DNA of 64,000 nucleotides from the NCBI GenBank assembly GCA_965649825.1, contig OZ287696.1, forward strand, positions 725,101-789,100. The letters run 5' to 3'. The notes beneath the pieces are model-generated. The model was given only the letters and a program-made list of their open reading frames with translations, ran no database searches and was not told the DNA's origin. Every line of letters begins with the position of its first letter. The stretch's first letter is position 1. Made by a program: the position numbers and the translations under genes. This DNA is from Penicillus capitatus (Eukaryota; Plantae; Chlorophyta). Shown one piece after another: positions 2,043 to 42,383 of this stretch.

Positions 2043-2764
2043 TGCTGTGCGTCATGTAGACGATCATGACGAATGGAAGCTGTGGTGTATCCCTGTAACA
2101 ATGTCACTGAGATCACACTCTGTATTGAAAATTCCTGCAATCGATTACAGGCAACATGCTAATTATCAACAGAACACCGAGGCTTATTCTCAAACGCATA
2201 TCATTTGCGAAGCTCGTGCTCTAAAAAGTCAGGCTTCTTAAAAAGTGCGAGTCAGTCTTTCACATTTCGGTTCGAAGTGAAGTCGTTTGCGTTTTGGTGT
2301 CCTGGTGTCTTCCCGGAGCACGAATTGAAGTTCATTTTCCTAACTTGCACGAAAGAAGTCCTAGGAGATCTCTACCAAATCTACACCAAAAACTACCAGA
2401 ATCTCAGCACTGTGTGTGATACGAACAAATCAGATTTGTCACCAACACAGATCCTATTTATCTTTTCGATGTCAAAGTGGTTTGCTCCCAAGGGGACAAG
2501 CTGTGTCGAAGCAGAGGCTTCAAAAATCGGCACTACAACACTCGAATAACTAACTACCTGACAGTCGCCCGAAAAGTGTCCGATGAGAAGCATCATATAA
2601 AATACAATCATCATCTGACCCTAAATGTTGATGAGAATATCCAACGCACCGTATCTACTGCGAAGTCTTGTGCGAACTTTGTTTTGTGATAAGGCAAGTA
2701 AGTGGCTTCTTAAGTTTCGTTCGGGGACGACCTTATGCCGAGTCTGTGCAGGTTACGACCGAAT

Positions 2765-5700
2765 ATGCAAGCACCGGATGAAGGACCCAGTGAAGTCGGA
2801 ATCCCCGCATCGGGAATAGGAGGAAGACCCTCTACCAAGCGCTTAACCGTCGGACAGCGCAATGACCCGAGACTTCTGCGTGCTGCCGCGATGAAATATA
2901 ATATCGACAGCACCAAATCGCTGGTGGTCGCGTACAACAAGACGACGGATAAAGACGAACGGGCCGTTCTCCTCAAATGGCTGCGCAAGTATGGCAGACG
3001 ACGCGAAGAATGTCTGAGGCTCGAGTCCGTTCTCGAGTACTCAGAATTGTCCAAAATCAAGTCCCGCTCCACACACGAAGACGACGTTCTGGAGGACTTA
3101 TTTCGGGGCCTCTGTTCCCGTCTCTGCCAAGGAGAGTTCCTCGAAACGTACACGGCTATCGCTCTCTGTAGGACGCTTACGCATGCCGATCCCTCCTCGT
3201 ATGGCGGCACTGCGCAGCTGGTCAACGTGACAAAGAAGCTTCTTGGCACTCTATCGCCACAGCCGAAGCTTACGAGAAAAAACTTTGCACAGTACGAAGC
3301 AACCTTTCAAGCACTACATCAAGCTTTCTTCCTGCTTCACATGTCCAATCGCAATGACATCGAAAGAAAAGAGAAGCAAGATCTCCGCCGGGCCATCGCG
3401 GCCAAGGAGAGTGAACTAGAGCTTTCGTGCAAGTACTACCCTCTGAGATTCCATTTAAATACTCTTCGGCAAGCAGTTGAACGCCTCGAGCTCAGAGATA
3501 CCCCGTCACACATAACACAAGCGATGCGATGCGTCGCTTGCGGACTGTATGTACTCCTCCACGTTTTCCACTGTTTCAGAAATCTGACAAGATGTGATAT
3601 CGATCCCGCGGCCATTGCCGATGCGTACGGAAAAAGCCAAGCCTATTTCGTCGACATGGGGGTATCGAGAAAAGCGTGGTTCGATTCGTTTCGAACTCTG
3701 ATGGCCGCAAGGCTATCTGCGTCGAAAACCGAAATGGATCTTGAGCATTTTGGCTTAGCATATCGCGCAGCAATAGAGGAACAACGAACGACGAGAGACA
3801 GAGAAGACTCGAAGGCATTGAGATTTGGCATCATCCAAGAGTTGGGTGTTCTTGTGAACAAGGGATCACCTGAGCACGTCTGCAGAGACGTCGCATTGAA
3901 GTTAACGGAACTCGTAGCGCGACAAGCTGTGGACGGAGGGTGGATTGATGACGACGATGTTTTGGTCGCACTGTCAGATGTCTTACGAGACACCGATGCA
4001 ATAACCGAATGCAACGAAGAGACCAAAGAAGCGCTTAGGGTCTTGTACGAATCATACAGGAGTGGTGCCTCGAAGGAATTGACGGAATTGATGAAAGCAA
4101 AAGACATGGAAGGCAGACATCGAACTGAAATCTCGCAAGCATTACAGGAGGAACGCGACCATTTGTGTACCAAGATTGGCAGAGACATGGGATATGTTCC
4201 ACCGGCTGTGATGAATTCAAACAAGGAAGACCTAAGGAGAACGTATATGAAAGACGACTTTGCAACGGTAACATCCCTGAAGGGGCAAGGTCATGTGAAC
4301 GAGAGTCTTGTTCTTGAAGGTGGCTTCTCTGTTCGAAGAAGGATCCCACAAACACGTCAAAGACATGAAGCACCACGTCGTTATCTACGAGGAGGTTGTA
4401 GAAGAGCGAAGAATCAAAGCAAGAGATGGTACGGACGAAGCTGTCCAGGGAGTGGAAGCGAGAGAGAGAGAAGGCCATCGGACCGCGAAAAGGATCAAGC
4501 AAAAGAATACTACGAGCAGAGGACGAAGGTCACAAAGCCCATCGCTCTTGACGACTTGTTCAAGCGAAGATCTCTCAAACCGGGAGATCCGGAAAGCGAA
4601 GTGCGGAGAGTCCTCATCTACGGAAACCCGGGATCCGGAAAGACGTGCATCACCAAAGTCGTCGCGAACAAATGGGCGTTGAGAGAAATGGCACGAGAGT
4701 TCAACGCCGTTTACGTGGTGCCGGTGAGAGTCTTGAACAGTGATGAGCCCAAGGGACAACAGTGGACGAGTCTCGAAGAAGTGATATCTCGAATTTGCTT
4801 CTCCAAGAGAAAACGCACTTCGGAGTACGAAGATTTGGCCCTCCAAATAGAAGATGACCTCGATAGTCCTTTAACGCTGCTCGTGGTCGATGGATTGGAT
4901 GAGGCGAATGACGACGCAAGGGAGATCGTGTCCACCATCTGGGAGCGTTCGTGCAAGGTCTTGTTCCTCTCTCGCCCCTACAACATGAGAAACATAAAAA
5001 CACGTGTCGACGTTCAAGTGGAGTGTCTCGGATTCAATGACGAGCAGTTGCGAGATTACATAGAGAGTGAACTGGCAGAGAACGAAGCCACAAACCTGAT
5101 CGAATCCCTCCAAAGCTCTACCGCCATGTGGGAGATGGCGCACATTCCGGTGACGGCGCACATCTTGTGTTCCTTGTCCAAGGACCACGGCACCGCAACG
5201 GAAGAACGAAGAAAGAGAGCGAGCATCTTTCAGATATACAAAGACATGGCAAACTACGTCTGGAAGAGGTTCAAGGAGAAGCCGGCGGCGAGGAACGTCA
5301 AGAGATGCGATCTCTTCGATGACCTGGAGAGAATCGCCTTCGAAACTCTTCGGAGTGGTTTGATTCTCATCCAACCAAGGCTCGTTATTGACTATGCAAC
5401 GTCTACAGACGCAGCTGGAATTTTCAAAGAAAGCGGCCTCCTATTGCTCGTGATGGAGGGTCGGCAGTATCAATTTCCTCACTTGACGTTTCAAGAGTAT
5501 TTTGCCATATCGGTACGTCACGAAGCAACAGCGACGTTGGATGGTATGGACCTTAATACGGTCATTCCTTCGGCTATCAATTTTTCGTCTGCACATGGAA
5601 AGGGTTTGTTTGTCATTTTTATTAGTACTCCCACAACATTAAGCACTCCTACTGAGGATGACATCATGCGTTCTGTTATGTTGCATAATGTCGCTTCAGA

Positions 5701-5812
5701 AGATATTGGAACTTGGACTAAAGACGATGTTGAATGTTTTTTTCAACGGTTGAAGGAAGAATTCTTTGACAGTTTTCCTGGATTGAGGCAATACTTTAAA
5801 ACGAAGAACTGA
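2765..5812 (+). CDS. NACHT (NLR-like STAND NTPase) protein 1 with ~500-aa helical N-terminal domain; likely frameshifted and C-terminally truncated
   Basis: Walker A IYGNPGSGKT, Walker B LLVVDGLDE, and YQFPHLTFQEYFA. The N-terminal region aligns by eye with the gene at 32442-36847. Probable intron 4268-4319. ATG at 2765 (the ORF track starts at 2735). Confidence 0.85.
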   Translation: MQAPDEGPSEVGIPASGIGGRPSTKRLTVGQRNDPRLLRAAAMKYNIDSTKSLVVAYNKTTDKDERAVLLKWLRKYGRRREECLRLESVLEYSELSKIKSRSTHEDDVLEDLFRGLCSRLCQGEFLETYTAIALCRTLTHADPSSYGGTAQLVNVTKKLLGTLSPQPKLTRKNFAQYEATFQALHQAFFLLHMSNRNDIERKEKQDLRRAIAAKESELELSCKYYPLRFHLNTLRQAVERLELRDTPSHITQAMRCVACGLYVLLHVFHCFRNLTRCDIDPAAIADAYGKSQAYFVDMGVSRKAWFDSFRTLMAARLSASKTEMDLEHFGLAYRAAIEEQRTTRDREDSKALRFGIIQELGVLVNKGSPEHVCRDVALKLTELVARQAVDGGWIDDDDVLVALSDVLRDTDAITECNEETKEALRVLYESYRSGASKELTELMKAKDMEGRHRTEISQALQEERDHLCTKIGRDMGYVPPAVMNSNKEDLRRTYMKDDFATVTSLKGQGHVNESLVLEGGFSVRRRIPQTRQRHEAPRRYLRGGCRRAKNQSKRWYGRSCPGSGSERERRPSDREKDQAKEYYEQRTKVTKPIALDDLFKRRSLKPGDPESEVRRVLIYGNPGSGKTCITKVVANKWALREMAREFNAVYVVPVRVLNSDEPKGQQWTSLEEVISRICFSKRKRTSEYEDLALQIEDDLDSPLTLLVVDGLDEANDDAREIVSTIWERSCKVLFLSRPYNMRNIKTRVDVQVECLGFNDEQLRDYIESELAENEATNLIESLQSSTAMWEMAHIPVTAHILCSLSKDHGTATEERRKRASIFQIYKDMANYVWKRFKEKPAARNVKRCDLFDDLERIAFETLRSGLILIQPRLVIDYATSTDAAGIFKESGLLLLVMEGRQYQFPHLTFQEYFAISVRHEATATLDGMDLNTVIPSAINFSSAHGKGLFVIFISTPTTLSTPTEDDIMRSVMLHNVASEDIGTWTKDDVECFFQRLKEEFFDSFPGLRQYFKTKN
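4460..4471 (+). repeat. (GA)6 microsatellite inside NACHT-1 coding sequence
   Basis: GAGAGAGAGAGA at 4460-4471; removing one unit restores the spliced reading frame. Confidence 0.8.
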
Positions 5813-7843: not shown

Positions 7844-9123
7844 ATGTATCACGACGACAGAACTGAACGGAACTATACGCGAGAGCGTCGCTACGACCGC
7901 TATGATAACAGATGTGACCATCGCCACGACGGTCGCTATGACAGTCGCTATGACCGACGTTATGAAAGAAACGACAGCTACAGGAACGACTCTTATCGCC
8001 GGTACCACTCTTCGACTCCATCCCCCTCGTCTACAGTTCTGTGAATGTCAGTCGCTCTGGCTATGAGCGTCGAGACTATGGACGTGGAACAAGCAACTAT
8101 GCACCCCCTCGACGCGAGAATCAGCCCATGACCCGTGAACAGCTGGAACGCCGTGTCTACTGTCACAATCTCTCTTACCGCAGCTCCTGGCAGGCGAGCC
8201 CCATCGGGATTCCAAATCACCTGTCACATCATCTCACTGTAGGATCTGAAAGACTACATGAGACAGGCAGGAGATGTTGAACATGTGCGGATCATGGAGG
8301 ATAGTGAAGGTCGTTCCCGGGTATGTCTTGTGAGGAGTCCATGGCTTCCGTGGAGTCACATGGCGGACCACTCGATTCACATTTGTTGCTGCACTATTTT
8401 CTGTCTTTGATGCTGATGCTGATGATGCTGATGGTTACACCGAGAGAGAACGGGATTCGTTACCCTCTGTTCAAAGGAGATCGGTGACGCATGTTTGGAT
8501 TGGTGTTGAAGGGATGCGCTGTGGTCATGTTTACGTCGAAGGAAGGAGCCCGTAAGGCAATCAAAACCCTCAACGACACTCAGTTTGGCGGTAACACTCT
8601 CTCTGCATGTTCAGTTCTGTCCATCCAGGAGATGATGTCGTTTGCAGGGCGTTCTATCTTTGTCCGCGAAGATCGTGCCTACAGCGAAAGAAAATCATCC
8701 AAAGACAGCAGACGCCGTGATTCCTCCACCGATTCTTCCTCCGAATCCGAAAGCAGCTCCCCCAAAAGATCTAGTCGGAGAGATCATCACCATCACCGTG
8801 AGAAAGATGAAGATCACGGAAGATCTTCAAAGCATCGACACCGATCTCGTTCGCGCAGTCCGTCAAGGTAGACAGGACAGAAGGAAAGAAGCTCTTTATT
8901 TCCTTGTCCTGTTTCGCCAGTCACTCCTCCAGTCGCGATGACGAGCGTCGTCATCGAGATCGCTCCTCTGAGAGAAGTTCAAGTCGTGAAGATGACAAAG
9001 CGTCTTCACGAGAAGAGAAGAACGATGAAGTCACGGCATCTGTCACATCGTTCTCTTGTTGATGAATGTTGTTGGATTTTGATTTAGGATGCAAAGCATT
9101 CCAAAGAAGAGCGTGATGCATAG
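7844..9123 (+). CDS. RRM protein (GBP2/hnRNP-M-like RRM) flanked by Arg/Asp/Tyr-rich and Arg/Ser-rich low-complexity regions
   Basis: RVYCHNLSYRSSWQ|DLKDYMRQAGDV...GCAVVMF...AIKTLNDTQFG|GRSIFVRED. RYD repeats at the N-terminus, RSRSRSPS tail. GC-AG intron at 8194-8242. Confidence 0.85.
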
Positions 9124-9197
9124 TTGTTTGTCATCTGATGTTCTGTTTGGCCTGTTTGAGTTCAAGGATGTCTGTTTGGGACGTTTACAAGAGGATT

Positions 9198-10619
9198 TTA
9201 CCATATGAATCGTGCCTCTGTCCCATCATCCCACAGAAACGGTTTCAGCAGGAAGAGACGGAGAATCCAGCAATTGAGGACTGCATAGACAGAAAACTGG
9301 ACAAGTAGCCAAGGGCGATTTAAGGATGGCAGATTGAGGGCAGCTAAAAACGTAGGAGGAAGAAAGTACCTGCCACAGAAGAAGATATAACCAGCATCTG
9401 GTGCAGCAATGGTGCTTACCGGAGTTCCAGCAGTCCACTGGGTACGATCGAGGCGCTGCTGCAGAGAAGGAAGGCCAGTGTCCACAAAGGACCTTTTGCC
9501 CGATTGAGGGTCCTCATCGTCACAAAGGCAGCTGTCCATGTCAGTGGCAACAAGATAAAGACCAGTCTATCTTGTGACAGTACCCTTCTCCAAAGATAAA
9601 ATGTCACATGTCTGTTGTCAGCTAAGAGATATGGATGTGCTATTCTGCCATAGAACAACGAAAGAGATAGAGCGACACAGACTAGGATACTAGAGAAAAG
9701 GGCGGCTCCACTAGAAAGGTGGGAGAGAAGAGATTTCATGAGTTGCGGAGGGGAAATGAAGGGAAAGAACAGAAGTAAGAGAAAGAGAAAGAGATAAGGG
9801 ATTTGAGCACCGTGCAACGCAGGCTGATGGGCTGCTTTGTCGCCCACGACAATACCGCCATTGTACACAACGAATCCGACGAAACTCAGCAAAACCAAGA
9901 GATGTGGCCATGAGAATTTCAACAGTGCGGTCCTCCTGTGCCATGCCTTTCGAATCAGAGCCTGAATTTCAGACCACAGTGTCGAATTCGGTGGAAGCTC
10001 GAGTTTGAGAAATCGCAAGATCGTCTCAAACAACAAGAAAGCGACCCAAATGACATTCGTCTGTCGGACCAGAATCGAGAGCCATCCCATCAAAGCAGCC
10101 CATGCATTACGTTGTTGAAGGGAAAGGAGGTAGGTTAACAGGATGAGAGACATCGACATCATGTCCGTGTAGAACAGGAAGGTGTAGAACCAGTAGACAG
10201 GGAAAAAACTCAAACAGACACTCCACTCTTTACTCTCTTGGCCTTCATGGATTCTATCCCGTACGGCTTTCATCAGAAGAGAATTGCACAACCATAGAGA
10301 GAGGTTGAAGGACCGGAGCACGAACAGATGGCAGCCCACTCCAGTGAGCCAACCAACGCTACGAGAGTAGACTGCCGCTAATAGATGAAATCCAGCAGGA
10401 GTCGTGATCTTGGGATCCCAAGTCCAGAAATCTCCTTGACAGTAGCGCTGTGTTTGGGGAACATGGAAGATTTCGTCCTGCACGTTGCGAGACGCAGCTC
10501 AGCTGCTACGCGCGACGTGTATGCGGTACCATGTATGCGACAGGAACGACGTAGGAAACGAGGATCCATGTAAACAGGACGAACAGTTGTGGGACATAAG
10601 GAATAAATTGTTGCATCAT
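9198..10619 (-). CDS. ALG10: Dol-P-Glc:Glc2Man9GlcNAc2-PP-Dol alpha-1,2-glucosyltransferase
   Basis: Exon 1 (10530-10619) MMQQFIPYVPQLFVLFTWILVSYVVPVAYM, intron 10478-10529, then DEIFHVPQTQRYC...WDPKITTP, RQTNVIW, VVGDKAAH, HPYLLADNRH, LELR|YF and a C-terminal RFIW. Confidence 0.93.
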
Positions 10620-11915
10620 TTTCGATGAAGAAAGGGCAAAGGACTCTGTCCAATTCTAAACTTCGCAATAAATTGTGTCAGCAACTGAGCCACGCGTTGT
10701 GGATCATCTTCATGAATGGCATGACCAGCCGTAGGCATCAAGGCTAGTTGGAATTTTCCCTGCATTTGACCGACAGTCAATATCTTGTCCAGTCGATCCG
10801 TCCCGGCCAGGCAGAGGAGCTTCGGAATGGATAAGCGGAGAAAAAGTTCACTCAATCCAAGGTACCATTCGGTCCAATACGGCTCAGAAGATAGGAGAGG
10901 TGTGCGCCAATGCCATTCCCCGTCAGCAGCTACAAGCATTGAGGGTATAGAAATGGCAGCGGACTCTTCCTGTTTGCACATCTTTGCGGCCAAAGCCCAA
11001 TCCACAGCAGATTCGAGTGACGAGAAGGATGTAGGGCGTTTTTTGATGACGCTTCTCATGTAAGGCAACGATGCTGTATCCGAAAATGAGAAGGCGAAGT
11101 GTGCGAGATGGGAGGTACCGATGGCCGTGCCTTCTACCACATCGATGACGACAATGCCTTCTAGACGCGCCATACGTCCCGTTGCTGCTGCTCGAACTGC
11201 CATCGCTGCTCCCATACTGTGCCCCACCATAACTAAAGGATGCTTCGAAACGCTGTCCTCTTTCTGAAGGCTGTCCCATACAGCAACGATATCTTCTGTC
11301 AGAGTCTGGGAAATACAGGAATCAGACACAGTGGCCTCGTACTCATTTAACAGGAGAGATGCCTGTGCGGACAGATCGCTTTCGTCTTGATGGGAGCTCT
11401 TTCCGTGTCCACGCATATCCATCGCCCACAGATGAAATCTAAGCCACCGAACTTGAATCATATTTTGCCTCTATTGGACAGCTTGTCTATCTTTCATAGA
11501 AACGTCACATAGATCAGAAACACCTTTCATGCATTCATGGATGGCACTGCCATCATCAGATCGACCTTTTGATTGTGCTCATCATTTTAGGACAAGTAAA
11601 AGATGCATTCCACGCTGAATATTTACCTTTCTTTAAGATGTCCAACCATAACAGACCACGTCAATGAAGAGTATCCGCCGCCATGTATCAAGAGCAGACT
11701 AGGTCCATCCTTGATTCCTGTTTCGTAAACACAGAAGGTGCCATCTCTACACACAATGTCATGTTTCGTAACCAGGAAATCATTTCTGTCCACCTCTCCG
11801 GCACCTCCACGTGACGGCATTGGTCCCAGTAGACTTGCCAGTCTGGCGGGATATTCTTCTCCGTTGTCGGACGTCGAAGTTCGCTACTATGATCTTCCTG
11901 CACGATAGGCAACAT
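10616..11915 (-). CDS. PPME1: Protein phosphatase methylesterase 1 (alpha/beta hydrolase)
   Basis: LLIHGGGYSSLTW, DMRGHGKS, VGHSMGAA nucleophile elbow, VVIDVVEGTA, GQMQGKFQL and GHAIHEDDP. Introns include a GC-AG at 11306-11362. Confidence 0.92.
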
Positions 11916-14412
11916 AGTTCCTCTTTAGTTTCTACGAAATGTACGACAATTTTGGCATTCGATGTTCAACGTGCTGTTCTTCTTACGACTGTGCCGTAAT
12001 TTAGGTACAATGGCCGAGACTGAACGACGCAAGGGCATCTCGGTTGCTGATGTCTGTCTACAGAGATGACGCAGGAGATCAAGTGCAAAAAACGTTGTCG
12101 GCCAGATTTTCTTCCAAGAAGTACCGCTTACATTTTAGAAAGATCATTGGCGATTCTAGATAAGATTCTCTTTCTTCTCTTATCTTTTCTCGGGTTACCG
12201 TTGATGGCCATCTTCTGGCAGTTCAGAAACACCCCACAGAATGTCTGTTGTCGACAAAAATGAAGGCTTCAGGATACATATGTACTCTTTTTAGCTGAAA
12301 CTTGGCTTTGCTGACTGAAAAGTGGCGGCGAGGGTCATTCTCGATTGTCAAAAGACAGGTCCATGTTTATAATATGTTGACATAATCCAGTCTTAACTCG
12401 GAGATGACTGACAAGTGACGGAGAACGCTGACTGCGTGTGATTCACTGACAAAGAGCGTAAGCAATGCGCCGTCCTCGATCACCGAGAAACTGCAATCTT
12501 TTCGGTAGCTGTTTTTGTTATCTAGAGTGTACAGATGACCGTTGGAATCAACTGTAATGTCCTGTTTCATGCGTTTTTAAGCCTTTGAAATCTAGTCTCT
12601 GCCAGCAAATGCGGTTCTGACTGCTGTTTTGATGAAATGGGTAGCGCACTGACAATCAGCACAAGAGCACTGAGGGAGCATGACATCATTTAAGTGCTTT
12701 TCCAGACTGTTTCTGCAGTTAGTCCCTTTTCCAGAGACTAAACCGGCCACGAAACCAGTTTCCATCGAAAAAGGAACGTCAAACAGAATCGACAAGCATA
12801 AAAGTCAAAAAAGTTGATTGATGACCAACACGTGCCATTCGAATTATCTAAAATAAGTAAGTGACTGCGTTATATTACTCTTCTCTCACTCATTGTGCGG
12901 CCTTCGCAGAGGCGTGACTGAACGAGCGTCAGTCTTCTGCTTCTCGCATTAAAAAGTCCGAATGATTTCACAAGCGCACAATGGAATAACAAATTGGACA
13001 TGTGAAGCAATTTATTTGTTGTTCACGGCATCCGTTAGTCGAGCGTTTGACTTTATTTCAAAGAAAAGAATCGAACAAGGTAAGGAATTCGACAGTGGCC
13101 CCTTCTCACGAACAGAGTGATATCTAAAATACCGAACGTCAACAGCCAGTTCGTTTGTTCAATTCCAGAGCAAACAGTCAGTCGATGTAACCTCAACGCG
13201 CAAGTCGCATGACAACGAGTTTACAGAACTGATGACGATCCCAGCCATAACTTTATTGTCTTTATTTACCCGGGACGAATCAAGGAAGATCAGTCTTGGA
13301 ATTGCTCCTTAGGTGGAAGAATAGTAACAGATCCGTAGTGGAAACACATCCGTCTCGATTTCGCAATTTCACTGGTCATTTAGTGTGATCGGGGTCACAC
13401 TTTTCGGGGGAGATATCACTGCCATCGTCCTCGACGTCATTGAAGAGCTACTGTCTAACCGTTTTCGAGTGGCCGGTGTCAATCGTCACTTACGGTTAAT
13501 TCTGGTGGATGAAGCAGAGGCAGCGATCTTGACACTGTCGCGTCCAACTGTTAGCACAGAGGTCCTTTCCTCTAACGAATAAGGGTAAGCAGAAAGTATG
13601 AGAATTAACGCTTTTTCGGATTCGATGTTTGCCTTGCAGCTCTCTCTCTCTCTAGGAGCTGCAAGAAAGCTGCCAGACTTCCGCACAGTCATCGTCATTC
13701 TATGGATGTAGCCAATCGCTGACAAGGTATCTGCCCACACGGGCGATTTTCAGCGATCCAATTGTTGAAGCTCTGCACCTTTGCAGCTCTGCCTGAACTA
13801 GCAATGCGAGAGATTGGAAGAACAAGAGTGGCTATGCAGATCTGATACCTGGTAGATCTCGTTGTCATTCCCGAAGGAAAACGCAACAACCAAAGATCCA
13901 TGTGCACATAAGAGCTTGTGGAACAGGTCGAAACTATTCCTTCGCCATTTTGGCTATCAACAACGTTCTGTTTGACGTGTCGAAAATCCATGGAACTCCG
14001 ATCACGTTCCCGGATGCACAGATAAGCAAACCAATTCGCTAAGGACCGTCCAAAATCCGTTGGATTGCACAGAGCTAGTGCAATTTTAGAAGTCGCCTCT
14101 CACAGTAGATCAGGTGAGTGCCCATCACATTTTGAATCTGGCGAAATCTGGCGAGGTAAATGGCACTGTCAGGTCAAATCTCCGCCTCGAAGACAATAGT
14201 CTTTGAGCAAGCAATGCTCGAGCAGACACGCCGTGGTTTTTATTCAAAGAACAGCGCGAGAATGAAGAGGTGGCGATTGGGTATTGGACTCATAAACGGC
14301 AAGTGAAGGGACCATCCGAGCATACGAGCGTCAGGTTGCGTTTTATACATCGACGATGTGACGCTTGTCTTCTTACACCCAAACCCACGTTTTCGACTCC
14401 GCAACTGTCGCC

Positions 14413-15018
14413 ATGCATTCTCTCCTCGTTTTTCTCCTTCTGTCTGCGACAGTCTCGCTGGTTACTGCGAGAGAGATTTCATTCCTACCGTGCGGAGACG
14501 GCGCACCCCTTGCGCTGACGCGTGTCGACTTTTTCCCTTACCCATTGAAACCCGGAGACATCGGATCCGTCACCGTGACAGGCGTCCTCAGTTATCCTTC
14601 ATTCTCCTAGTGTGTTTTGAGGATGTCACACTTGTGTGTCCAAAGACAAGACGGTCCAAGGAGGAGCATATTCCTTCGAATTCGCACCCAGTCCGAGTTA
14701 TGCTACGCTTCCGGAAGAAGCACGAAGTGGCCATCTCTGTAACCTCATTCCCTGTCCTTCGGCACCCGGGCCCATTCTGTTCATGCTCCAAGCCAAAGTG
14801 CCTTCCGACATAGAAGCAGTACGGGATTCCCCTCAATCCCTGTTCTGATTAGCTTCATGAAGGACTCGTACGTTGTCAGAGCCACAGCGATCGATGAAAA
14901 AGAGGAGCCGCTGCTGTGTCTGGCGTTGTCCATTGAAGTAGAGGAAAAGAAGCATGAGAAGGGCGAGACCATGTCCAGCGAGTGGACTCAACCGGAGTTG
15001 CTGCGTTACCAGGTTTAG
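14413..15018 (+). CDS. ML-domain (MD-2/NPC2-like) lipid-recognition protein A, secreted
   Basis: Signal peptide, FLPCG, DFFPYPLKPG, GHLCNLIPCP and LLCL; two short introns. Confidence 0.8.
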
Positions 15019-16220
15019 CAAGAACCTCAAAAACGAAAGTCCGCCCATCTCCACGCAAAAGTGTTTCGAACTGCGCATTTTTATTGTTCCTGTCGAACCG
15101 TGTACATGCAAATTTTGAAGGGAGGTTTTGCGAAAATGATTTGTCAGCGATAGACATGCTGGTTGTGAAACATCGCGTCTCTGTATACCATCGTCGACTG
15201 CCGATGACTTTGTGCCCGAGAATGAAGTTGTATGGGGACAGATGCAGTTGATCTGTCACGTTCTTAGATTTATTGGCTTCCAAGAGTACAAGAAGCACAA
15301 CACGATGGGACTTGGTGTATCAATCTTGATGGCACTGATCGGTGTGAGAAGCACCATTCTGAAGAGGAGAGCGAGACGTACATATTGGCATAGATGGCGG
15401 CGATCTTCTGTTTGAATGTGCCACAGAAAGAAGCACTTGTTTTGGACACTCCGTGAGATCAGCCAACCCGCTGCTTCGAGGCATACATTGTATGTACCGG
15501 TTCCGCGAGCATAATACTCTGCGTGAAGGTGCGCAGTAGAAAGCGATTTCTCCTGTATGAAATGTTTGTTGGATAGATAAATGCAAAGCATGGCACAGGA
15601 GAAAATGTACAAACAAGCTAAGAAATGCTCTTCGGCAACATCAGGTTTGTATCACCATCGCACAGATCTACATGAGCCATGACGCCTTGACGGTTCCCGT
15701 CCCATATACTGGACAGCCGCCGCCACTGCTCTCATCCTTTCTGCATCTACGAACGTTTCAATATTCGCCCAGTGGACGGAGCCATGCCTTGCAGCTCAAT
15801 TTCTACGATCATCCAGACGCATCCCTTTCTGACTTTCCAACAAACATTGCCATCCACCTCCGTAATCACAGACACCATATCTCAGCAACAGCCGAGCTGA
15901 TGGTGTTTTTCCTTTGCAGATCTCAGCCGAATTCCATGTCTACCGAGTGCTACACAATCTGTGATGGTGGTGATGGATAGGGAATGATGGTTTAACGAGC
16001 CTGCGAATGCTATTAGTGAAGAAGCAAACAGCGATGCAAGGTATTCGCTTGACGTAACCAAAGGCAAGGATCGAAAACTTCGCGATGCTATCGTCGATTT
16101 GCCAAAGTGAAGCGCAACCGATCCGTGACAGCGAATTGGTATACTTGCGAACGCCCTGATGTGACGTTGGATGGCGGCGCCAAAGAAAAGAGTCCATCTG
16201 CGATTTGTGCGTCATTCGCC

Positions 16221-32441: not shown

Positions 32442-35400
32442 CTAGTGCAAATTGAAAGGACGTGGCAATTCTGGGTAGTCTTTTGCAAATAGATCCATGA
32501 TTTTAGAATGGAGTGGATAGAATGCATTTCGTGGGTATGAGCCTACGGTCTCGTATCTATCGAGGTGCGCCGTGAGCCTCAGAGTTCCGTCGCGTGCCTC
32601 CGGGCCAACAGTTACCGGCACTTCGATCAGAAGATTCAACAGGCTCTGCGCGGTGGTGTCGTTTTCGCCTCTTTCTTGAATGGCATTGTCAAAAACTCGG
32701 CGGACATCTTCGAGACCGGGCCCTTGAAATCCGTCGCCATTTTCTTCTACGTCCAAGAGCTTCCCATGACAGCCTGATTGGTGTTTGTCCTTGTTTTCGT
32801 GTTTCTTTGACGTTTCTGCTTCCGATTCTTCTGCTTCTTCCACGTCTGGCTCTGCTCTTTTGTCGAGAAGATCTTTCAAAACTTTAAGGACATCGGGGTC
32901 TTCCTCAATAAGACGTTTGAGGGCCTTCATCGCCGCCGCCGCCTGAAGACCAACGTTTTCGTCAATATGGTGGGATTCCGACTCTAGCTTCGATACTATG
33001 TCTTTTGCATTTTGGAACTCCTCTCGTGTGCGAGCGAAAAGTTTTTTCATCACCGATGTACGCTCTTCATCTTCATTCTCTTCGCATTCGAGCCATCGCT
33101 CGTAGGCATCGCTGACGTGGTGTTTGGATTTGTCGCTCTGAAGACAGGCGCAATCAAGAAGCGCATTCGTCACCAAACGCACAGCTTCAGGCTTTTCCTT
33201 GCACCAGTTCTCAAGCCATTCTACTGTATTCTTGACATCAGAATCCCAGCACCAGTTAGAGAAAAGTAAAAGCGCAGTGCCTAAGATTGAACGATCCTTA
33301 TTGTGTTCCAGGCGATGGTCTTCATTCTCTCCCAGACACCTCCAAAGCCTCAACCTGATTTCTTCTGTGCAATCCTTAAACCGAGATTTGACGTGTTTAT
33401 CTTTGCAACAATGAATGACCAATGCATTCCATATAAATGCCTTCACGACCACCAAGTCAACGCAACAATCAGCTTGTCCAACGCATTTCTGTTCAAGCAG
33501 ATTATAAAGGTCATTACAGCGGTCGCCTGGAAAGATTCTGATGAGACATTTTGCCATCTTCACACCTCGGACGATTTCCTTTCCACGCTTGTAGCGTAGT
33601 TTTTGTTTCAATTGCTCGTATACTTTTTCCCAGTGCTTGGGCGAGTACTTCAGCAATCTTACAACGTGCCCGAATCTATACTCGTCCACCAGTTTTTCGA
33701 GTCTCGATGTCTCGATGACTGAATCCAGCACTTCCGAAAATGTATTGAAGATGTTTGGGAGTTTTCGAAACGCTCTGGTTGCAATGTCCCACAGTGCAGT
33801 CGTAGGATCCGTTTTGGCAAGTATACAACTCACGGTGTCTACGAGACGAACGATCGATTCATTTTTCAGAAGTTCGTTGGTCACCGAGTCCACGGCGCCG
33901 GCTAACCATGCATTGAGGATGCGAAGCTTCAGAAGAAAATGCTGTATGCCAATCATCTCCGGGGTCTCTTTGTCCACTAACGAAATCACGTGGAGAAACG
34001 TTTGCACTTTGTTCTGTTCCGCAAGTGATTGTATCGCAAAAGAAACAGACACTCTGTATTTTCCGAGGTATCTTCCAGACTCGATCGTGGACACCACTGA
34101 GTTCCGGATCTTTTTCTCTGGACTCTGCAGGCAGTGAGCAAGGTGTCTTCCCACAAAGTACTCTTGGAATGTGTTGTGGGGAAAACGGTACTGATTTTCT
34201 CTCGTCGAAAAAAACAGTAAACCATTATGTTTCAAGATTTCCCAGACATCGCTATCCGTCGTCTGTCTTGTGACGATAAGTTGACTAATGTAGTGTTGAT
34301 CATTGCGCCATGCTTCGAATGAGATCTTTTCCAGCCAAGAGAAGATCTCTCCGCGGTCCACTTTTTCCATGTTCGGTCTTGACGAGAATCTCGCCCAGAC
34401 GTAGTTCACCATCTTCGTGATCAGAGAATACATGGATCTCTTCTGATTCTCATCATCGGGCCCCAATTCGCCTTCTCTCCACAGTGTGCATACGATATAG
34501 AGCATCATGGGGATGCGCATAATCTCTGCTATCACGGGACAACTGCCAACGGAGTCAATGAGTTTCTCTCCTTGCTCGCCATTGAGTATTTTTTGCACGT
34601 AATTCGTCTGTTGCTCCTTGTCGAAGCCCATACACTCCAACTCGCGATCGGCATATCGCCGCTCGTCGTAGAGATTATGCGGGCGACTGATGGTGAGAAG
34701 GGAGCATTCTTTACGTTTTATGTCGGAGACTATTTCTCTTGCTTCTTTGTTCCCCTCATCCAACCCGTCCAAGATGAGCAGCGTTTTTGGATTGTCGAGA
34801 TCGTCGTTGACTTGCGTCAAGAGTGTCGACGGCATTGAATTATGGCGATCGGAATACCACATATTCACAATGGTCGACGCAACTATGTCCCATTCTCTGA
34901 CATCTTCACTCGGGCGATTGAGCTTTCTCACTGGCAGCACGTACACCATTTCGAATCGATTGCCCAGTTTTCCCGTTGCCCATTTGTGTGCCACTGATTT
35001 GGCGATGCACGTCTTCCCTGTGCCAGGGTCTCCGTACAACAGCACTCTACGGATGTCTGCCGCCTGCCCCGTCTGATCTTCGAAAGGATTGAACAGATCT
35101 TCGAGAGAAATGCGTTTCAGGACTTTCTGGCTTTGGCTGCCTTGTTCCTGTGCTACACCAGCCGAACGCCTTCTCAGTTGTCTACCTCCGCTTTCGTCAT
35201 TACTGCCCAGTTCAGGTTCGTGGACACAAATGGCATGTTGCATTTTATCGACATGAAAAGGTTCACCTTGACCAATCGGCGGCGGCACCTTCACAAAACT
35301 GTTTGGCAAAAGGAGAAGAGAAGCAAACGACGCACCGTCACATTTTCGCTGTTGCAGTATCTTTCCTTCAGGTATTCAATGTTCGAGGCAATCTCGTCGA

Positions 35401-36847
35401 CGGGAATATATCCCATCTCTTGACCCACTTGGCAACACAGTCCTTGGTACCACATTCTTTTCCCCTGTTCGCGTTGCAAAACGCGGTTGCTTTCGAGCTT
35501 CTGATCGAATTTTATCCGATGTGATATGCTCTTCTTTCCTAAACTGTCAAAACGCTGCGGCAGCTCTTGCAACAAAGATTCTATGTCCGCGACGCGTTCT
35601 CCTTTTGCACGAATGCGCAGCACTTCTTCGAAAAAGACTTCAAAAACATCATCATCCTCTATCCATCCCTCCTCAAGGATACGATTCTTCGTCAGCGTCA
35701 TAAATCTCTCTTCAGCTCTCTTCTGCGCATTCTCGTTCCCGTGGATCATAATTTGCGAAAGTTCATAGAGGGCACCACAGCGCAGTATCTTCAAATCGAC
35801 CTCTCTTCTTCTTTTAGACTGAATCTCTACCACAGCATCAAGCCCCTTGAAAAATATGTCCAGTACATTGTCTCCTCCTCGCACAACCAGCACTCTCGCC
35901 GCTTCCAAATCTTGCAGCAAGCAGATTATCGAAGCGTATTGATGTGCCGGACATGTTGGGGCATTCTCTGCACTGGCATCAAGTCTCTTCTCGAGAGCAT
36001 CAGGCTCAATCGATAGATGCACAGGCTCCGTCGAGGTATGAAGCAGTAATAGGATGCCACAACAGTAACCCAGCGTCAAACAGCGTAATGCCCGGAAGAT
36101 GCAGTTGTCCGTTGTGCCAAGACGTTGGATGCTCTGCTCAATGAGAGCGAAATGGAATCGAAGTGGATAGTAATTGAATGAGTTTCGGAGCTCGATTCGC
36201 TTCTTGCTGACTTCTTTGAGAATCGAGCGCTTGTCCTCTGGATACAAACGCGTGTAACACATCTCTCGAAGGTAAAAAACAATCAGATGCAGCGCCACAA
36301 ATGTGGGTCGGTATCTCTCGAAATCCACCGCTTGCAGATCGGGATGCGGCGACAGACTCCTCATGAGCCGTATTGCCAGAGGCATCAGTAATGTATCGTC
36401 ATCGATGACCTTCCTGTGCGCAGACAGGAGTGCCTCGTGAAGCGCCTTCGCAATTTCTGGTTTGGTATCTTCATTCTCAGGTATCGCATGACGGATATCA
36501 GAGAACAGAGATCTGAGAAGGCGCTCGGCCCGGTCATTCCGTGGCTTGATCTTCGCCAGTTGTGTATACTCTATAGTGGCTTCGATGCTCCGAGTTTCCT
36601 GAGCCTTTTCTGCGAATTCTTGCAGCCATTTGAACAGAATCTTCCGCTCCTCGGAATCTTGCACTTCATTAAATGCTTGGACGAGCTTTGCTGTCGATTC
36701 AATCTTGTAATCCCAAGCGAGTCGGCGCAACAGACGGTGCTCGTAACGCTCACGCTCATAGGGACTCATCCTAGACGGTCGCCGAACAAGCGTCTGTGTT
36801 GAAGGACTTCTATCGCCAGGTGTATCGCCAGCATTTCTTGACGGCAT
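32442..36847 (-). CDS. NACHT (NLR-like STAND NTPase) protein 2: helical N-terminal domain, NACHT, and degenerate HEAT/ARM-like C-terminus
   Basis: ORFs of 518 and 955 aa joined by a phase-0 GT-AG intron at 35289-35335. LYGDPGTGKT, LLILDGLDE and YRFPHNTFQEYF; about 500 aa of helical C-terminus. Confidence 0.9.
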
Positions 36848-37017: not shown

Positions 37018-39389
37018 ATGCGAAGCAACGAGCCACAGTGGGCCGTTCTCGAAATGGAAAACGAACCTGAAGATGCGCAGTTGTCGCCCATCTACGATTT
37101 CAACACCCGAAGGTGAAGATTGACCATCGGATGACCACGCCTTATCCATCCCTCATCCAGAAACCATTGGAAAGAATGGCGCACGTATTCGCGGAAGCAT
37201 TACACCCGTTGGGTAGAGATCCGTAAGGACAGCGTGTTGTTCTCTCTTATCCCTTGCTCTCTGTTCTGTGCAGTGATTTGGATTGTCCTCTGTTCATTGA
37301 CCATCACCTTCCTCTGTTTGTACATCTCTGCCAAAGATTTAAAGTCTTCACGTGCGGACAACCACGGCGGACAGGAGTCGCTCGGAGAATCGGCCAATTC
37401 TTTGTTTTACTCGGAGACAGGCTACAGCCCCTTCCGCCGCTTTGAAATGAACTCGGATTATCGTGACGTGCCACGCACGCAAACATCATCAAGAGGGATG
37501 GTGGCATCGGATCATGGGAAGTGCTCGGACATGGGTGGGAAGATCCTGAACTGGGGTGGTAATGCTATGGATGCCGCCGTGACGACGGCGCTTTGCATCG
37601 GCATCCGTAATCCATTCGCAAGCGGCACGGGTGGAGGAACGTTCATACTAGTTCATCTGAAGGACGGGACATCCACTGTGATCGATGCACGGGAAGTTGC
37701 GCCAGGCCATGCCACGCAAGACATGTTCGAAGGTAGAGGACAGACAGCAGATCACCCTTGTGCTCTGTCTGAGATGTCAACCAGGTCACGCTCGCCTCGA
37801 TTCAGCTTCGGGAGGACTGTCGATTGCGGTTCCGATGGAATTGTTGGGTCTTGAGATGCTGCATAAAAAGTACGGGGACTTGACATGGAAAGAAGTAGTG
37901 GAGCCCGTCATACCTCTCGCCCGAGATGGCTTCGAAGCCAATCCTGAGCTGGTGATTACTATGCAGATGAACTTTACACGCGACAACATCACCACAGTGC
38001 ACTTCTCCATAACCGTGATCTAAACTGAGATGACTGTTGCAGATGCCGGACTCGATCAAAGAGACGTTCTTTATTCTCGACGAAGGTGTTTGGCGTCTGC
38101 CAAATGTCGGGGAACGCTGCTGCAAGAGGCCAGTATTGGCAGCGACACTGGAGCGCACAATCGAAGAAGGGGTCCAGCATATGTATAACACAGAATGGGG
38201 CGATGATTTGATCAGGGACATTAATGAGCTCCCGTTTCCAGGAATCTTTGAGAAGAAAGATTTGAGGCGTTCCAGGCCCGTCGTCAAAGAGCCGATTAGG
38301 GGAAAGGTTTTCGGAATGGATGTGGTCTCTGTTCCGCCGCCCTCTTCGAGTGCGACACTGATCATGGCTCTGCAGTTTATGGAATCGTATTCCAATCATG
38401 CAAACCAGACACTCAACTATCACAGAATGGTAGATCTGCATCGACCCCTTGAACTATAACCGCCATCTGTTTCAGGTGGAGGCCATGAAGCATATGTTTG
38501 CTGTCCGTTCGCATTTTGGAGATACTGGCACGGAAAACGAGTTCCTGGATATGAACAAAGTGCTCAAAGCGATCTCGACATCATCATTTATCGAGGAACT
38601 GAGGTAAAGTCCATTGCTGTCACGATAAGCGGATACACGTAGAGTGGCATGGCAGACACATCACAACGGATTCTGGCGTCCAAGATATATATGCATACGG
38701 TGGACGCTACTATCGGACGACTGACATCCTGTTGGATAAAGGAACGTCGCAGATTGTAACGGCGGATAGATATGGCAATGCTGTGTCCATGACCACCAGC
38801 ATCAATTGGCATTTCGGATCGTTGATGATTGGAAAGAGAACTGGACTTCTATTGAACAACCACATGGACGACTTCACCACCCCTGGCGTGCTAAATCCAT
38901 CCAGCAGTGCCCAGTTCCTGAAGAACGCGAGCAATTTCATCGCTCCGGGAAGAAAGCCACTATCGTCCATGTCCCCTCTCATCTTCACAGAGAACAAGAA
39001 GCTGAAACTGGCCATCGGCGCTTCCGGAGGCTATCAAATCCTCACGGCGTTGCTGCAGGTGCTGTACAGGCATTTTCGCATGGGAACAGATCTTGAGACG
39101 GCCATCAATACCGGAAGACTTTCGTGCTACGCCGATGTTGTCTATGTGGAAGATGTTCAGAGAGGACATGCAGAATTCGATACTTCAGATGAAATCCTCC
39201 AGTTCCTCGAGAGCCTCGTCTGCAGCTCTGTGCACGTCTCCTATGTCTAAGCGAGCATGCATTTAGGGACATCACGTGCAAACGGACCAGCGTCTTTCAA
39301 GCGTCGTGGCGGTGGAGGTGACCGAAGAGGGCAAGTTTCGTGGATTTGTCGATCCGCGCAAAGATGGGACATCCGCTAGCAATGTATGA
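37018..39389 (+). CDS. GGT: Gamma-glutamyltranspeptidase copy 1 (type II membrane anchor)
   Basis: GMVASDHGKCS, GGNAMDAAVTTALC, SGTGGGTF, IDAREVAP, IAVPMEL, catalytic GTSQ, SMTTSINWHFGS, PLSSMSP and DPRKDG. N-terminal hydrophobic helix. Confidence 0.92.
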
Positions 39390-40012: not shown

Positions 40013-42383
40013 ATGCGTAGCAACGAATCGCAGCGGGCTGTTCTCAAAATTAAAAACGAACCCGAAGATGCGCAGTTGTCGCCCATCTACGATTTCAACA
40101 CCCGAAGGTGACGACTTGCCATCGGATAGCTACGCCTTATCTATCCCTCAAGGAACCATTGGAAAGAATGGCGCATGTATTCGCGGAAGCATTCCAACCG
40201 TTGGGTAAAGATCTGTAAGGCCAGCATGCTGTTCTTGCTTATCACTCGCTCTCTGTTCTGTGCAGTGGTCTGGATTGTCATCTGCTTTTTGACCAACACC
40301 CTCCTCTGTTTGTACATCTCTGCCAGCGATTCGAAACCTTTACGTGCAAGAAACTACGACACTGAGGACTCGTTCGGAGAATCGGCCGGGTCTTTGTTTT
40401 ACTCGGCTTCAGGCTACACCCCCTTCCACAATTTTTGTTGAACTCGGATTATCGTGACGTGCCACGCACGCAAACATCATCCAGAGGGATGGTGGCATCG
40501 GATCATGGGAAGTGCTCGGATATGGGTGGGAAGATCCTGAACTGGAATGGTAACGCTATGGATGCCGCCGTGACGACGGCGCTTTGCATCGGCATCCGTA
40601 ATCCATTCGCAAGCGGCACAGGTGGAGGGACGTTCATACTGGTCCATCTTGACAACGGGACATCCACTGTGATCGATGCACGGGAAGTTGCTCCAAAACG
40701 CGCGACTGAAGAAATGTTCAAAGGTAGAGGAAGCGACAGATCACCCCTGTTCTCTGTCCAAATTGTCATCCAGGTCACGCTCGTCTTGATTCAGCCTCGG
40801 GAGGATTGTCGATTGCGGTTCCGATGGAATTGTTGGGTCTCGAGATGCTGCACAAAAAGTACGGGAAGTTGACATGGAAGGAAGTAGTGGAGCTTGTCAT
40901 ACCTCTCGCCGAAGATGGCTTCGACGCCAATCCCGAGCTAGTGTATATGCTGCGGGAGGGCTTTACACGCTCCGGCGTCACCACAGTGCACTTCTCATAG
41001 CCGTGATCTAAACTGAGATGACCGTTGCAGATGCCGGACTCGATCAAAGAGACGTTCTTTATTCTCGACGAAGGTGTTTGGCGTCTGCCAAATGTCGGAG
41101 AACGGTGCTGCCAGAGGCCAGCATTGGCAAAGACTCTTAAGCGCACAATTAAAGAAGGGGTCGAGCATATGTATAACACAGGATGGGGCGACAAATTGAT
41201 TAGGGACATTAATGAGCTCCCGTTTCCAGGAATCTTTAAGAAGAAAGATTTGAGGCGTTCCAGGCCCGTCGTCAAGGAGCCGATCAAGGCAAAGGTCTTC
41301 GGAATGGATGTGTTGACTGTTCCGCCACCCTCTTCAGGCGCGACACTGATTATGGCGCTTAAATTTTTGGATTTGTATCACGATCATCCAAACGAGAATC
41401 TCAGCGACCACAGAATGGTAGATCTGCATCGACCCCTTGAGCTGTGGCTATCTGTTTCGGGTGGAGGCCATGAAGCATATGTTTGCTGTCCGTTCGCATT
41501 TAGGAGATCCTGGCCCGGATAATAAGTTCCTGAATCTGGACAAACTGCTCAAAAATATATTGAAAAAATCATTCGTCAAGAAACTTAAGTAAAGTCCATT
41601 GCTGTCACGATAAGCGGACACACGTAGAGTGGCATGGCAGACACATCACAACGGATTCTGGCGTCCAAGATATATATGCATACGGTGCGAAGTACCACTA
41701 TAGGCATGAGGTACTGTTGGATGAAGGAACGTCGCACATTGTTACCGCGGATAGATATGGCAATACTGTGTCCATGACCACCAGTATCAATTGGCATTTC
41801 GGATCGTTGATGATTGGAAAGAGGACTGGACTTCTATTGAACAACCACATGAACGACTTCACCACCCCTGGTGTGCTAAATCCATCCAGCAGCGCCCAGT
41901 TCCTGAAGAGCACGGACAATCTCATCGTTCGGAGAAGAAAGCCACTATCCTCCATGTCCCCTCTCGTCTTCACAGAGAACAAGAAGCTGAAACTGGCCAT
42001 CGGCGCTTCCGGAGGCTATCAAATCCTCACGGCATTGCTGCAGGTGCTGTACAGGCATTTGAGCGTGGGAACAGATCTTGAGACGGCCATCAATACCGGA
42101 AGACTTTCGTGCTACGCCGATGTTGTCTATGTGGAAGATGTTCAGAGAGGACATGCAGAATTCGATACTTCAGATGAAATCCTCCAGTTCCTCGAGAGCC
42201 TCGTCTGCAGCTCTGTGCACGTCTCCTATGTCTAAGCGAGCATGCATTTAGGGACATCACGTGCAAACGGACCAGCGTCTTTCAAGCGTCGTAGCGGTGG
42301 AGGTAACTGAAGAGGGCAAGTTTCGTGGATATGTCGATCCGCGCAAAGATGGGACATCCGCCAGCAATCTTTGCCACTGTTGA
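40013..42383 (+). pseudogene. GGT: Gamma-glutamyltranspeptidase copy 2, probably disabled
   Basis: Paralogue of copy 1. A 1-nt deletion in the T-run at 40432-40436 gives a stop at 40439-40441. The intron acceptor at 41459-41460 is GG where copy 1 has AG (38474-38475). Confidence 0.75.

Follow-up and report, generated by a model that had tools for sequence, protein, structure and literature searches.

Conserved overlap of stop and start codons between the spliced nuclear genes PPME1 and ALG10 in a green-algal lineage

A 64,000-nt stretch of DNA (contig OZ287696.1, positions 725,101 to 789,100; hereafter "the window", with coordinates counted from its first base) carries on its minus strand two genes that abut without any intervening sequence. 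The upstream gene (10616-11915) is assigned by homology to PPME1, encoding protein phosphatase methylesterase-1, and the downstream gene (9198-10619) to the ALG10/DIE2 family of alpha-1,2-glucosyltransferases; both proteins are closest to those of Bryopsidales in homology searches. The stop codon of PPME1 and the start codon of ALG10 share bases. This stop/start overlap, between two full-length, spliced and functionally unrelated nuclear genes, is real, conserved and unusual. Three relatives served for comparison. The first (L001) is a 1.39-Mb contig from assembly ERZ26696514 (184x coverage) of a sister species, whose DNA is about 90% identical to that of the window. The second (L004), from the Logan assembly of SRR33785045, is more distant, with 46% identity to the window in ALG10 and about 66% in the last exon of PPME1. 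The third (L007, or P0122) is an intron-less, transcript-like JGI contig with a PPME1 that is 66% identical.

The PPME1 model comprises five coding exons on the minus strand (11915-11794, 11746-11627, 11438-11363, 11305-11119 and 11073-10616), which together give a coding sequence (CDS) of 963 nt and a protein of 320 residues. Its four introns measure 47, 188, 57 and 45 nt, and all four positions were confirmed by the intron-less L007. Matches named PPME1 share 44-53% identity with the model across 90% or more of its length, with Ostreobium and Volvox among the best named, and the matches carry the domains PF12697, PF00561 and PF12146. The model contains the sequence VGHSMGAA, which was scored as agreeing with the nucleophile-elbow motif of alpha/beta-hydrolases, GHSMGG. 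Immediately before the stop codon the protein reads FRIGQSPLPFLHRK, where L001 has FLNRK, L004 FVNKQR and L007 FLNKQ. The end point is thus common to the three relatives, in keeping with the view of an initial annotation, made from the sequence, that PPME1 stops at its normal C-terminus.

The spliced ALG10 model yields a product of 439 residues from three minus-strand exons. Exon 1 (10619-10530) encodes the 30 residues MMQQFIPYVPQLFVLFTWILVSYVVPVAYM, a hydrophobic N-terminal segment ending in YM. It is followed by a 52-nt intron with GT..AG boundaries (10529-10478), counterparts of which are found in L001 and L004 (54 nt in the latter). Exon 2 (10477-9420) begins with DEIFHVPQTQRYC, the hallmark of the ALG10 core, and is assigned to PF04922 (DIE2_ALG10). 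After a second intron of 50 nt (9419-9370), exon 3 (9369-9198) ends with GTEARFIW and a TAA stop codon at 9200-9198, a C-terminus that agrees with those of homologues. The model matches more than 1000 ALG10 proteins. Among the matches listed, PF04922 is present in 120 out of 120, and the best named match is from Ostreobium (42% identity over 96% of the query), with Bryopsis at 37%. In this family the motif YMDEIFH(I/V)PQ follows a hydrophobic N-terminus; here exon 1 ends in VAYM and exon 2 starts with DEIFHVPQTQ. Since homologues have 15-45 residues ahead of YMDEIFH, the 29-residue leader is normal. Between the window and L001, exon 1 shows four synonymous and four non-synonymous differences and no indels. 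Homology therefore upheld both gene identities proposed in the initial annotation, and the splice model its 30-residue first exon of ALG10.

The introns of both genes are mostly tiny, 45-57 nt. One of them, the PPME1 intron at 11362-11306 of the minus strand, has GC-AG boundaries; although it is in frame in the window, its length of 57 nt in the window and 56 nt in L001 confirms that it is non-coding. The only long intron, PPME1 intron 2 (11439-11626), carries an element resembling a C/D-box small nucleolar RNA (11513-11588, minus strand), which, besides an AUGAUGA motif and a terminal CUGA, has a 14-nt block, ACAAAAGGUCGAUC, that does not vary among the window, L001 and the distant L004. In Rfam it gave sub-threshold matches to several C/D families (the best being sR5, 20.3 bits, E=0.01), and Rfam and tRNA scans of the whole 64-kb window returned no match. 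At the other end of the gene pair, the interval 9100-9311 is 97-98% identical to L001. It covers the 3' end of ALG10 and a 135-nt spacer to a convergent plus-strand gene encoding an RRM/RS-domain protein (stop codon at about 9062), and the last 45 ALG10 codons show almost no synonymous changes relative to L001. This conservation suggests overlapping antisense 3' untranslated regions (UTRs) or some other shared element.

Read directly, positions 10627-10609 of the minus strand give CAT CGA AAA TGA TGC AAC AA. The PPME1 stop codon TGA (10618-10616) is straddled by two ATGs that are both in the ALG10 frame (10619-10617 and 10616-10614), forming the hexamer ATGATG at 10619-10614; the codons lie exactly where the initial annotation had placed them. 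The two genes thus overlap by 4 nt, ALG10 being in the -1 frame relative to PPME1. Upstream in the ALG10 frame, a TAG codon occurs at 10658-10656, and the ATG at 10619 is the first one after it. There is nothing rare about an ATG next to a TGA as such; what sets this one apart is that it opens a conserved, hydrophobic and correctly spliced first exon.

The same arrangement was found in L001, where the junction, CGAAAATGATGC, is identical (hexamer at 9877-9882) and lies within flanks that are collinear and free of indels. The L004 sequence keeps PPME1 followed by ALG10 in the same relative reading frame, with a TAG stop codon, a spacer of 23 nt and a single ATG. There, ALG10 exon 1 has 32 codons and is again hydrophobic, ending in YV before the GT of the intron, so that Met30 of the window protein is replaced by Val. 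Collinearity between the window and L004 reaches as far as the RRM gene, RRP4 and aspartate-semialdehyde dehydrogenase; the adjacency of PPME1 and ALG10 is therefore not uniquely preserved. Synteny, which the initial annotation had named as a check, held in part: the pair is kept in L001 and L004 but absent from Ostreobium and Bryopsis, where ALG10 has other neighbours. In a EukProt species, ALG10 (g1594.t1) and PPME1 (g1579.t1) lie 15 gene numbers apart. Within the window, which has about one gene per 3 kb, the spacing of the pair is unusual, other same-strand spacers between open reading frames (ORFs) measuring about 0.7 kb (between RRP4 and a NACHT gene) and about 1.2 kb (between two gamma-glutamyltranspeptidase copies).

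How might ALG10 be expressed from such a position? The initial annotation was right that the intergenic space is nil. It does not follow that the genes form a bicistron, because UTRs and promoters can sit inside the coding sequence of a neighbour. We favour an arrangement in which the promoter and 5' UTR of ALG10 would be nested in PPME1, the two transcription units overlapping and possibly giving rise to some read-through RNAs as well. On this model, two complete, unrelated housekeeping genes of the same strand would have lost all the DNA between them in this lineage. ALG10 would be translated from a capped mRNA of its own, starting inside the last PPME1 coding exon, perhaps 85-190 nt from the ATG, and PPME1 transcripts would end inside or beyond ALG10; RNAs reading through both ORFs may well exist, but most ALG10 protein would not be made from them. 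Our confidence in this arrangement is evenly balanced. In our judgement, a promoter buried in PPME1 is slightly more likely than the other mechanisms that the initial annotation had put forward.

Several observations are consistent with a nested ALG10 promoter. The stretch immediately preceding the ALG10 ATG is devoid of ATGs over 85 nt in the window (10620-10704) and in L001, and over 130 nt in L004, against an average of one ATG per 38.5 nt across PPME1. An ATG-free stretch of 85-130 nt fits a short private 5' UTR of ALG10. The last 190 nt or so of the PPME1 CDS (10810-10620, minus strand), 93-98% identical to L001, would be the candidate region for such a promoter and 5' UTR or, alternatively, for an element promoting reinitiation. 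Compared with L001, the window shows a proportion of synonymous differences (pS) that drops over the last 30 PPME1 codons from about 0.32 to 0.05; it is 0.05-0.10 over the last 30-45 codons and 0.21 gene-wide, nucleotide identity to L001 over the last codons being 95-98%. The 963 nt of PPME1, with their 23 internal ATGs, keep a ribosome that scans from the PPME1 cap from ever arriving at the start codon of ALG10, and reinitiation after long ORFs is generally inefficient. In L004, the start codons of a minus-strand CCT/TCP1 chaperonin gene and of plus-strand PPME1 face apart with only 51 nt between them (8481-8533), which suggests that in this clade regulatory DNA is packed inside genes or right up against them.

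Other results weigh against a nested promoter. With Fisher P=0.10 over the last 60 codons, the drop in pS falls short of significance; equal conservation and similar dips are seen in other parts of both genes, and a codon comparison of the window with L004 and L007 revealed no junction-specific constraint. Nor is compactness uniform across the window: other same-strand spacers measure about 0.7-1.2 kb, so that general compaction does not account for the junction. Furthermore, colinear ORFs lying so close together in other green algae have generally proved to be co-transcribed (PMC7896298, PMC11291117). Signals for 3'-end formation point the same way in the window and in L001, neither of which has a sense-strand TGTAA within PPME1 or ALG10. 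PPME1 RNA may consequently run through ALG10 in both, and so be bicistronic by structure. Finally, no spliced ALG10 transcript of the clade came up when ALG10, PPME1 or a profile built on the N-terminal part of the clade's ALG10 served as the query; the transcript evidence thus favours neither a bicistron nor a nested unit.

The pentamer TGTAA is probably the poly(A) signal here, as in other chlorophytes: in the window, 6 of the 12 ORF ends with Pfam support are followed by it at no more than 260 nt (binomial P=0.002). One copy lies at 9189-9185 of the minus strand, 9 nt past the ALG10 stop codon, and the previous sense-strand copy is at 12132-12128. In L004, a sense TGTAA lies 210 nt beyond the PPME1 stop codon, within exon 2 of ALG10, and PPME1 transcripts could be polyadenylated there. 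The hints given by TGTAA are thus mixed, being opposite in the window and L001 on the one hand and in L004 on the other. As for transcripts, only 4 nt follow the PPME1 stop codon in the transcript-like L007 contig. Other candidate junction transcripts were rejected: P0112 (L005), in which ALG10 lies beside an HD-domain gene, is unrelated, and P0124 (L006) and P0154 (L008-9) carry PPME1 without ALG10. A metagenome-wide scan for the back-translated, clade-specific PPME1 tail FRIGQSPLPF yielded only two AT-rich chance matches.

The strongest alternative to a nested promoter is a single spliced, capped and polyadenylated PPME1-ALG10 mRNA on which ALG10 would be made by termination-reinitiation. 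After terminating at the UGA, the 40S subunit would re-engage either of two AUGs, the one that starts a nucleotide before the stop codon or the one that overlaps its 3' end (AUGA/UGAUG). The geometry is ideal for such a mechanism: the spacing is zero, the in-frame ATG is doubled around the stop codon, L001 has the same configuration and in the distant L004 only 23 nt separate the two ORFs. From upstream of PPME1 onwards, the sense strand of both the window and L001 offers no TGTAA before the one lying 9 nt beyond the stop codon of ALG10, and the junction RNA appears unstructured (z=+1.43), leaving the start codon accessible. Green algae are known to make polycistronic nuclear mRNAs, and some Auxenochlorella loci have an inter-ORF size of 0 (PMC7896298, PMC11291117). 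However, the first ORF (ORF1) of those loci is 189-399 nt long, with 0-7 ATGs before the second (ORF2). The published high-confidence set does have a few long, ATG-rich ORF1s, such as that of Cre03.g152425 (957 nt, 15 ATGs before ORF2), but at such loci in the Chlamydomonas set ribosome footprints on ORF2 are mostly a few percent of those on ORF1, reaching about 25%, and so low an ORF2 output seems ill suited to an essential glycosyltransferase.

Features of the junction itself also speak against reinitiation. ORF1 has 320 codons, and known cases of efficient reinitiation after long ORFs need dedicated elements. UGGGA, the first motif of the viral reinitiation element discussed below, is missing from the 100 nt that precede the junction in both the window and L004, and folding z-scores (+1.43 in the window, -0.78 in L004) gave no sign of significant RNA structure. 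The possible PPME1 poly(A) signal inside ALG10 in L004 does not suit a common mRNA and, as we see it, nonsense-mediated decay would normally be expected of an mRNA in which two introns, those of ALG10, follow the PPME1 stop codon. Reinitiation, one of the routes that the initial annotation had offered, has the geometry in its favour but no positive support from a motif or from RNA structure. On balance we rate a bicistronic mRNA read in this manner as a tentative alternative, less probable than a nested promoter. The fuller proposition, that ALG10 is produced from a conserved PPME1-ALG10 bicistronic mRNA by reinitiation at the AUGAUG/UGA overlap after an AUG-rich ORF of 320 codons, is a shade more doubtful still.

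It could also be that the ALG10 start is mis-modelled, the gene using another first exon or codon, or that a -1 slip on A-AAA-UGA fuses the two ORFs. In the sequence CGA-AAA-UGA (10624-10616, minus strand) the lysine tRNA could re-pair one base back, before the stop codon, and enter the ALG10 frame, and L004 has the same relative frame. This shared frame is a coincidence expected one time in three, and L004 lacks a slippery sequence before the stop codon; a frameshift fusion is unlikely. As to another start, exon 1 supplies the hydrophobic N-terminal segment that is present in all homologues, and the ATG at 10619 is the first in an open frame spliced precisely to exon 2. In L004, where Met30 is Val and the sole ATG lies 23 nt past the PPME1 stop codon, an upstream start is needed as well. 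Taken together, these points make a mis-modelled start or a fusion improbable.

Leaky scanning along a bicistronic mRNA, the other translational route envisaged in the initial annotation, fares worse. It has in its favour the tight spacing and the green-algal setting, and against it the composition of PPME1. On its way from the initiator of PPME1 to the ATG of ALG10, a scanning ribosome would pass 23 ATGs, 12 of them in frame. The ratio of observed to expected ATGs is about 1.56 (25 in the PPME1 CDS versus 16.0), compared with 0.43-0.49 in verified loci, and the 963 nt of ORF1 compare with medians of 291 nt in Auxenochlorella and 357 nt in Chlamydomonas. With an A at -3, the context of the PPME1 start codon is not obviously weak, and in the published system putting back one AUG into ORF1 abolished ORF2 expression. 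The number of ATGs in PPME1 and the length of ORF1 exclude leaky scanning for practical purposes, and we consider it highly improbable. An assembly or sequencing artefact at the junction has the least probability of all, virtually nil: although the window sequence is found in a metagenome assembly (ENA ERZ25074695, in the 942,848-bp contig ctg340469_44x_l), the independently assembled L001 has an identical junction within collinear flanks that are about 90% identical and free of indels.

Should the two proteins be translated from one mRNA, algal bicistrons would not be limited to short, AUG-free ORF1s and leaky scanning, and the junction (about 100 nt plus AUGAUG/UGA) would offer a compact natural element for two-gene expression in algae. 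Reinitiation, if true, would give algal nuclear bicistrons a second mechanism besides leaky scanning and provide a rare cellular example of efficient restart behind a long ORF; it would do so in a lineage close to Bryopsidales, from which no polycistrons have been described. If the promoter of ALG10 is nested in PPME1, the locus would be a clean and conserved eukaryotic case of regulatory and coding information carried by the same bases, and a warning to annotation pipelines, which are prone to merge, truncate or drop such genes. On either reading, it is a sharply defined test case, if one of limited practical value.

Elsewhere in the window, large NACHT/NB-ARC paralogues occur as one continuous ORF at 2735-5812 (plus strand) and as two ORFs overlapping by 19 nt at 32442-36847 (minus strand). 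A gamma-glutamyltranspeptidase gene is duplicated in tandem on the plus strand (37234-39250 and 40435-42235), with a TGTAA 222-224 nt past each last ORF. The region from about 12500 to 16000 has no counterpart in the otherwise collinear L001, where 7675-7908 matches window positions 16201-16067 and 8019-8255 matches 12444-12247. Long ORFs with a Pfam match are lacking there, and the stretch may be an insertion or a fast-evolving region.

The junction resembles several known arrangements and departs from each. Its 4-nt stop/start overlap is identical to the ATGA overlaps of translationally coupled genes in bacterial operons. Unlike these, it joins spliced eukaryotic genes whose closest relatives are in green algae, and no Shine-Dalgarno logic applies. 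Viral examples of termination-reinitiation at stop/start overlaps include the termination upstream ribosome-binding site (TURBS) of caliciviruses and the UAAUG of influenza B M1-BM2. Motif 1 of TURBS, UGGGA, is complementary to 18S rRNA and is presented by a defined structure. The present pair shares with these systems the AUGA/UGAUG geometry after a long upstream ORF. It differs in being a cellular gene pair, in the L004 start codon lying 23 nt past the stop and in lacking both UGGGA (the viral motif, not one derived from the host 18S rRNA) in the 100 nt upstream and any stable or conserved structure.

Overlapping transcription in compacted eukaryotic genomes was reportedly described by Williams et al. 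in PNAS in 2005. As in such genomes, no intergenic space is left here, so that signals for starting and ending transcription must lie inside neighbouring genes, and L004 has in addition the 51-nt divergent spacer. The likeness stops short of the window as a whole, with its roughly one gene per 3 kb, same-strand spacers of 0.7-1.2 kb and many small introns kept. Overlapping transcription units are known from the compacted genomes of microsporidia and nucleomorphs (PMC3629993).

The nearest comparison is with the nuclear bicistrons of the green algae Chlamydomonas, Chromochloris and Auxenochlorella, where inter-ORF medians are 40-183 nt and the mechanism demonstrated is leaky scanning, which needs a short, ATG-poor region before ORF2 (PMC7896298, PMC11291117). 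PPME1 and ALG10 are absent from the Dataset S01 lists and the other supplements of these surveys that were examined. Like the published pairs, they are two complete ORFs on the same strand of a chlorophyte nuclear genome, with a spacing far tighter than that of ordinary colinear genes; like some Auxenochlorella loci, they have an ORF1 stop codon and an ORF2 start codon that overlap. Unlike them, they have an ORF1 of 963 nt that is not depleted of ATGs, and they belong to a lineage related to Bryopsidales rather than to Chlorophyceae or Trebouxiophyceae. Overlaps between ORF1 stop and ORF2 start have already been published for algal bicistrons (PMC11291117), and the PPME1-ALG10 pair is an atypical further case of this geometry.

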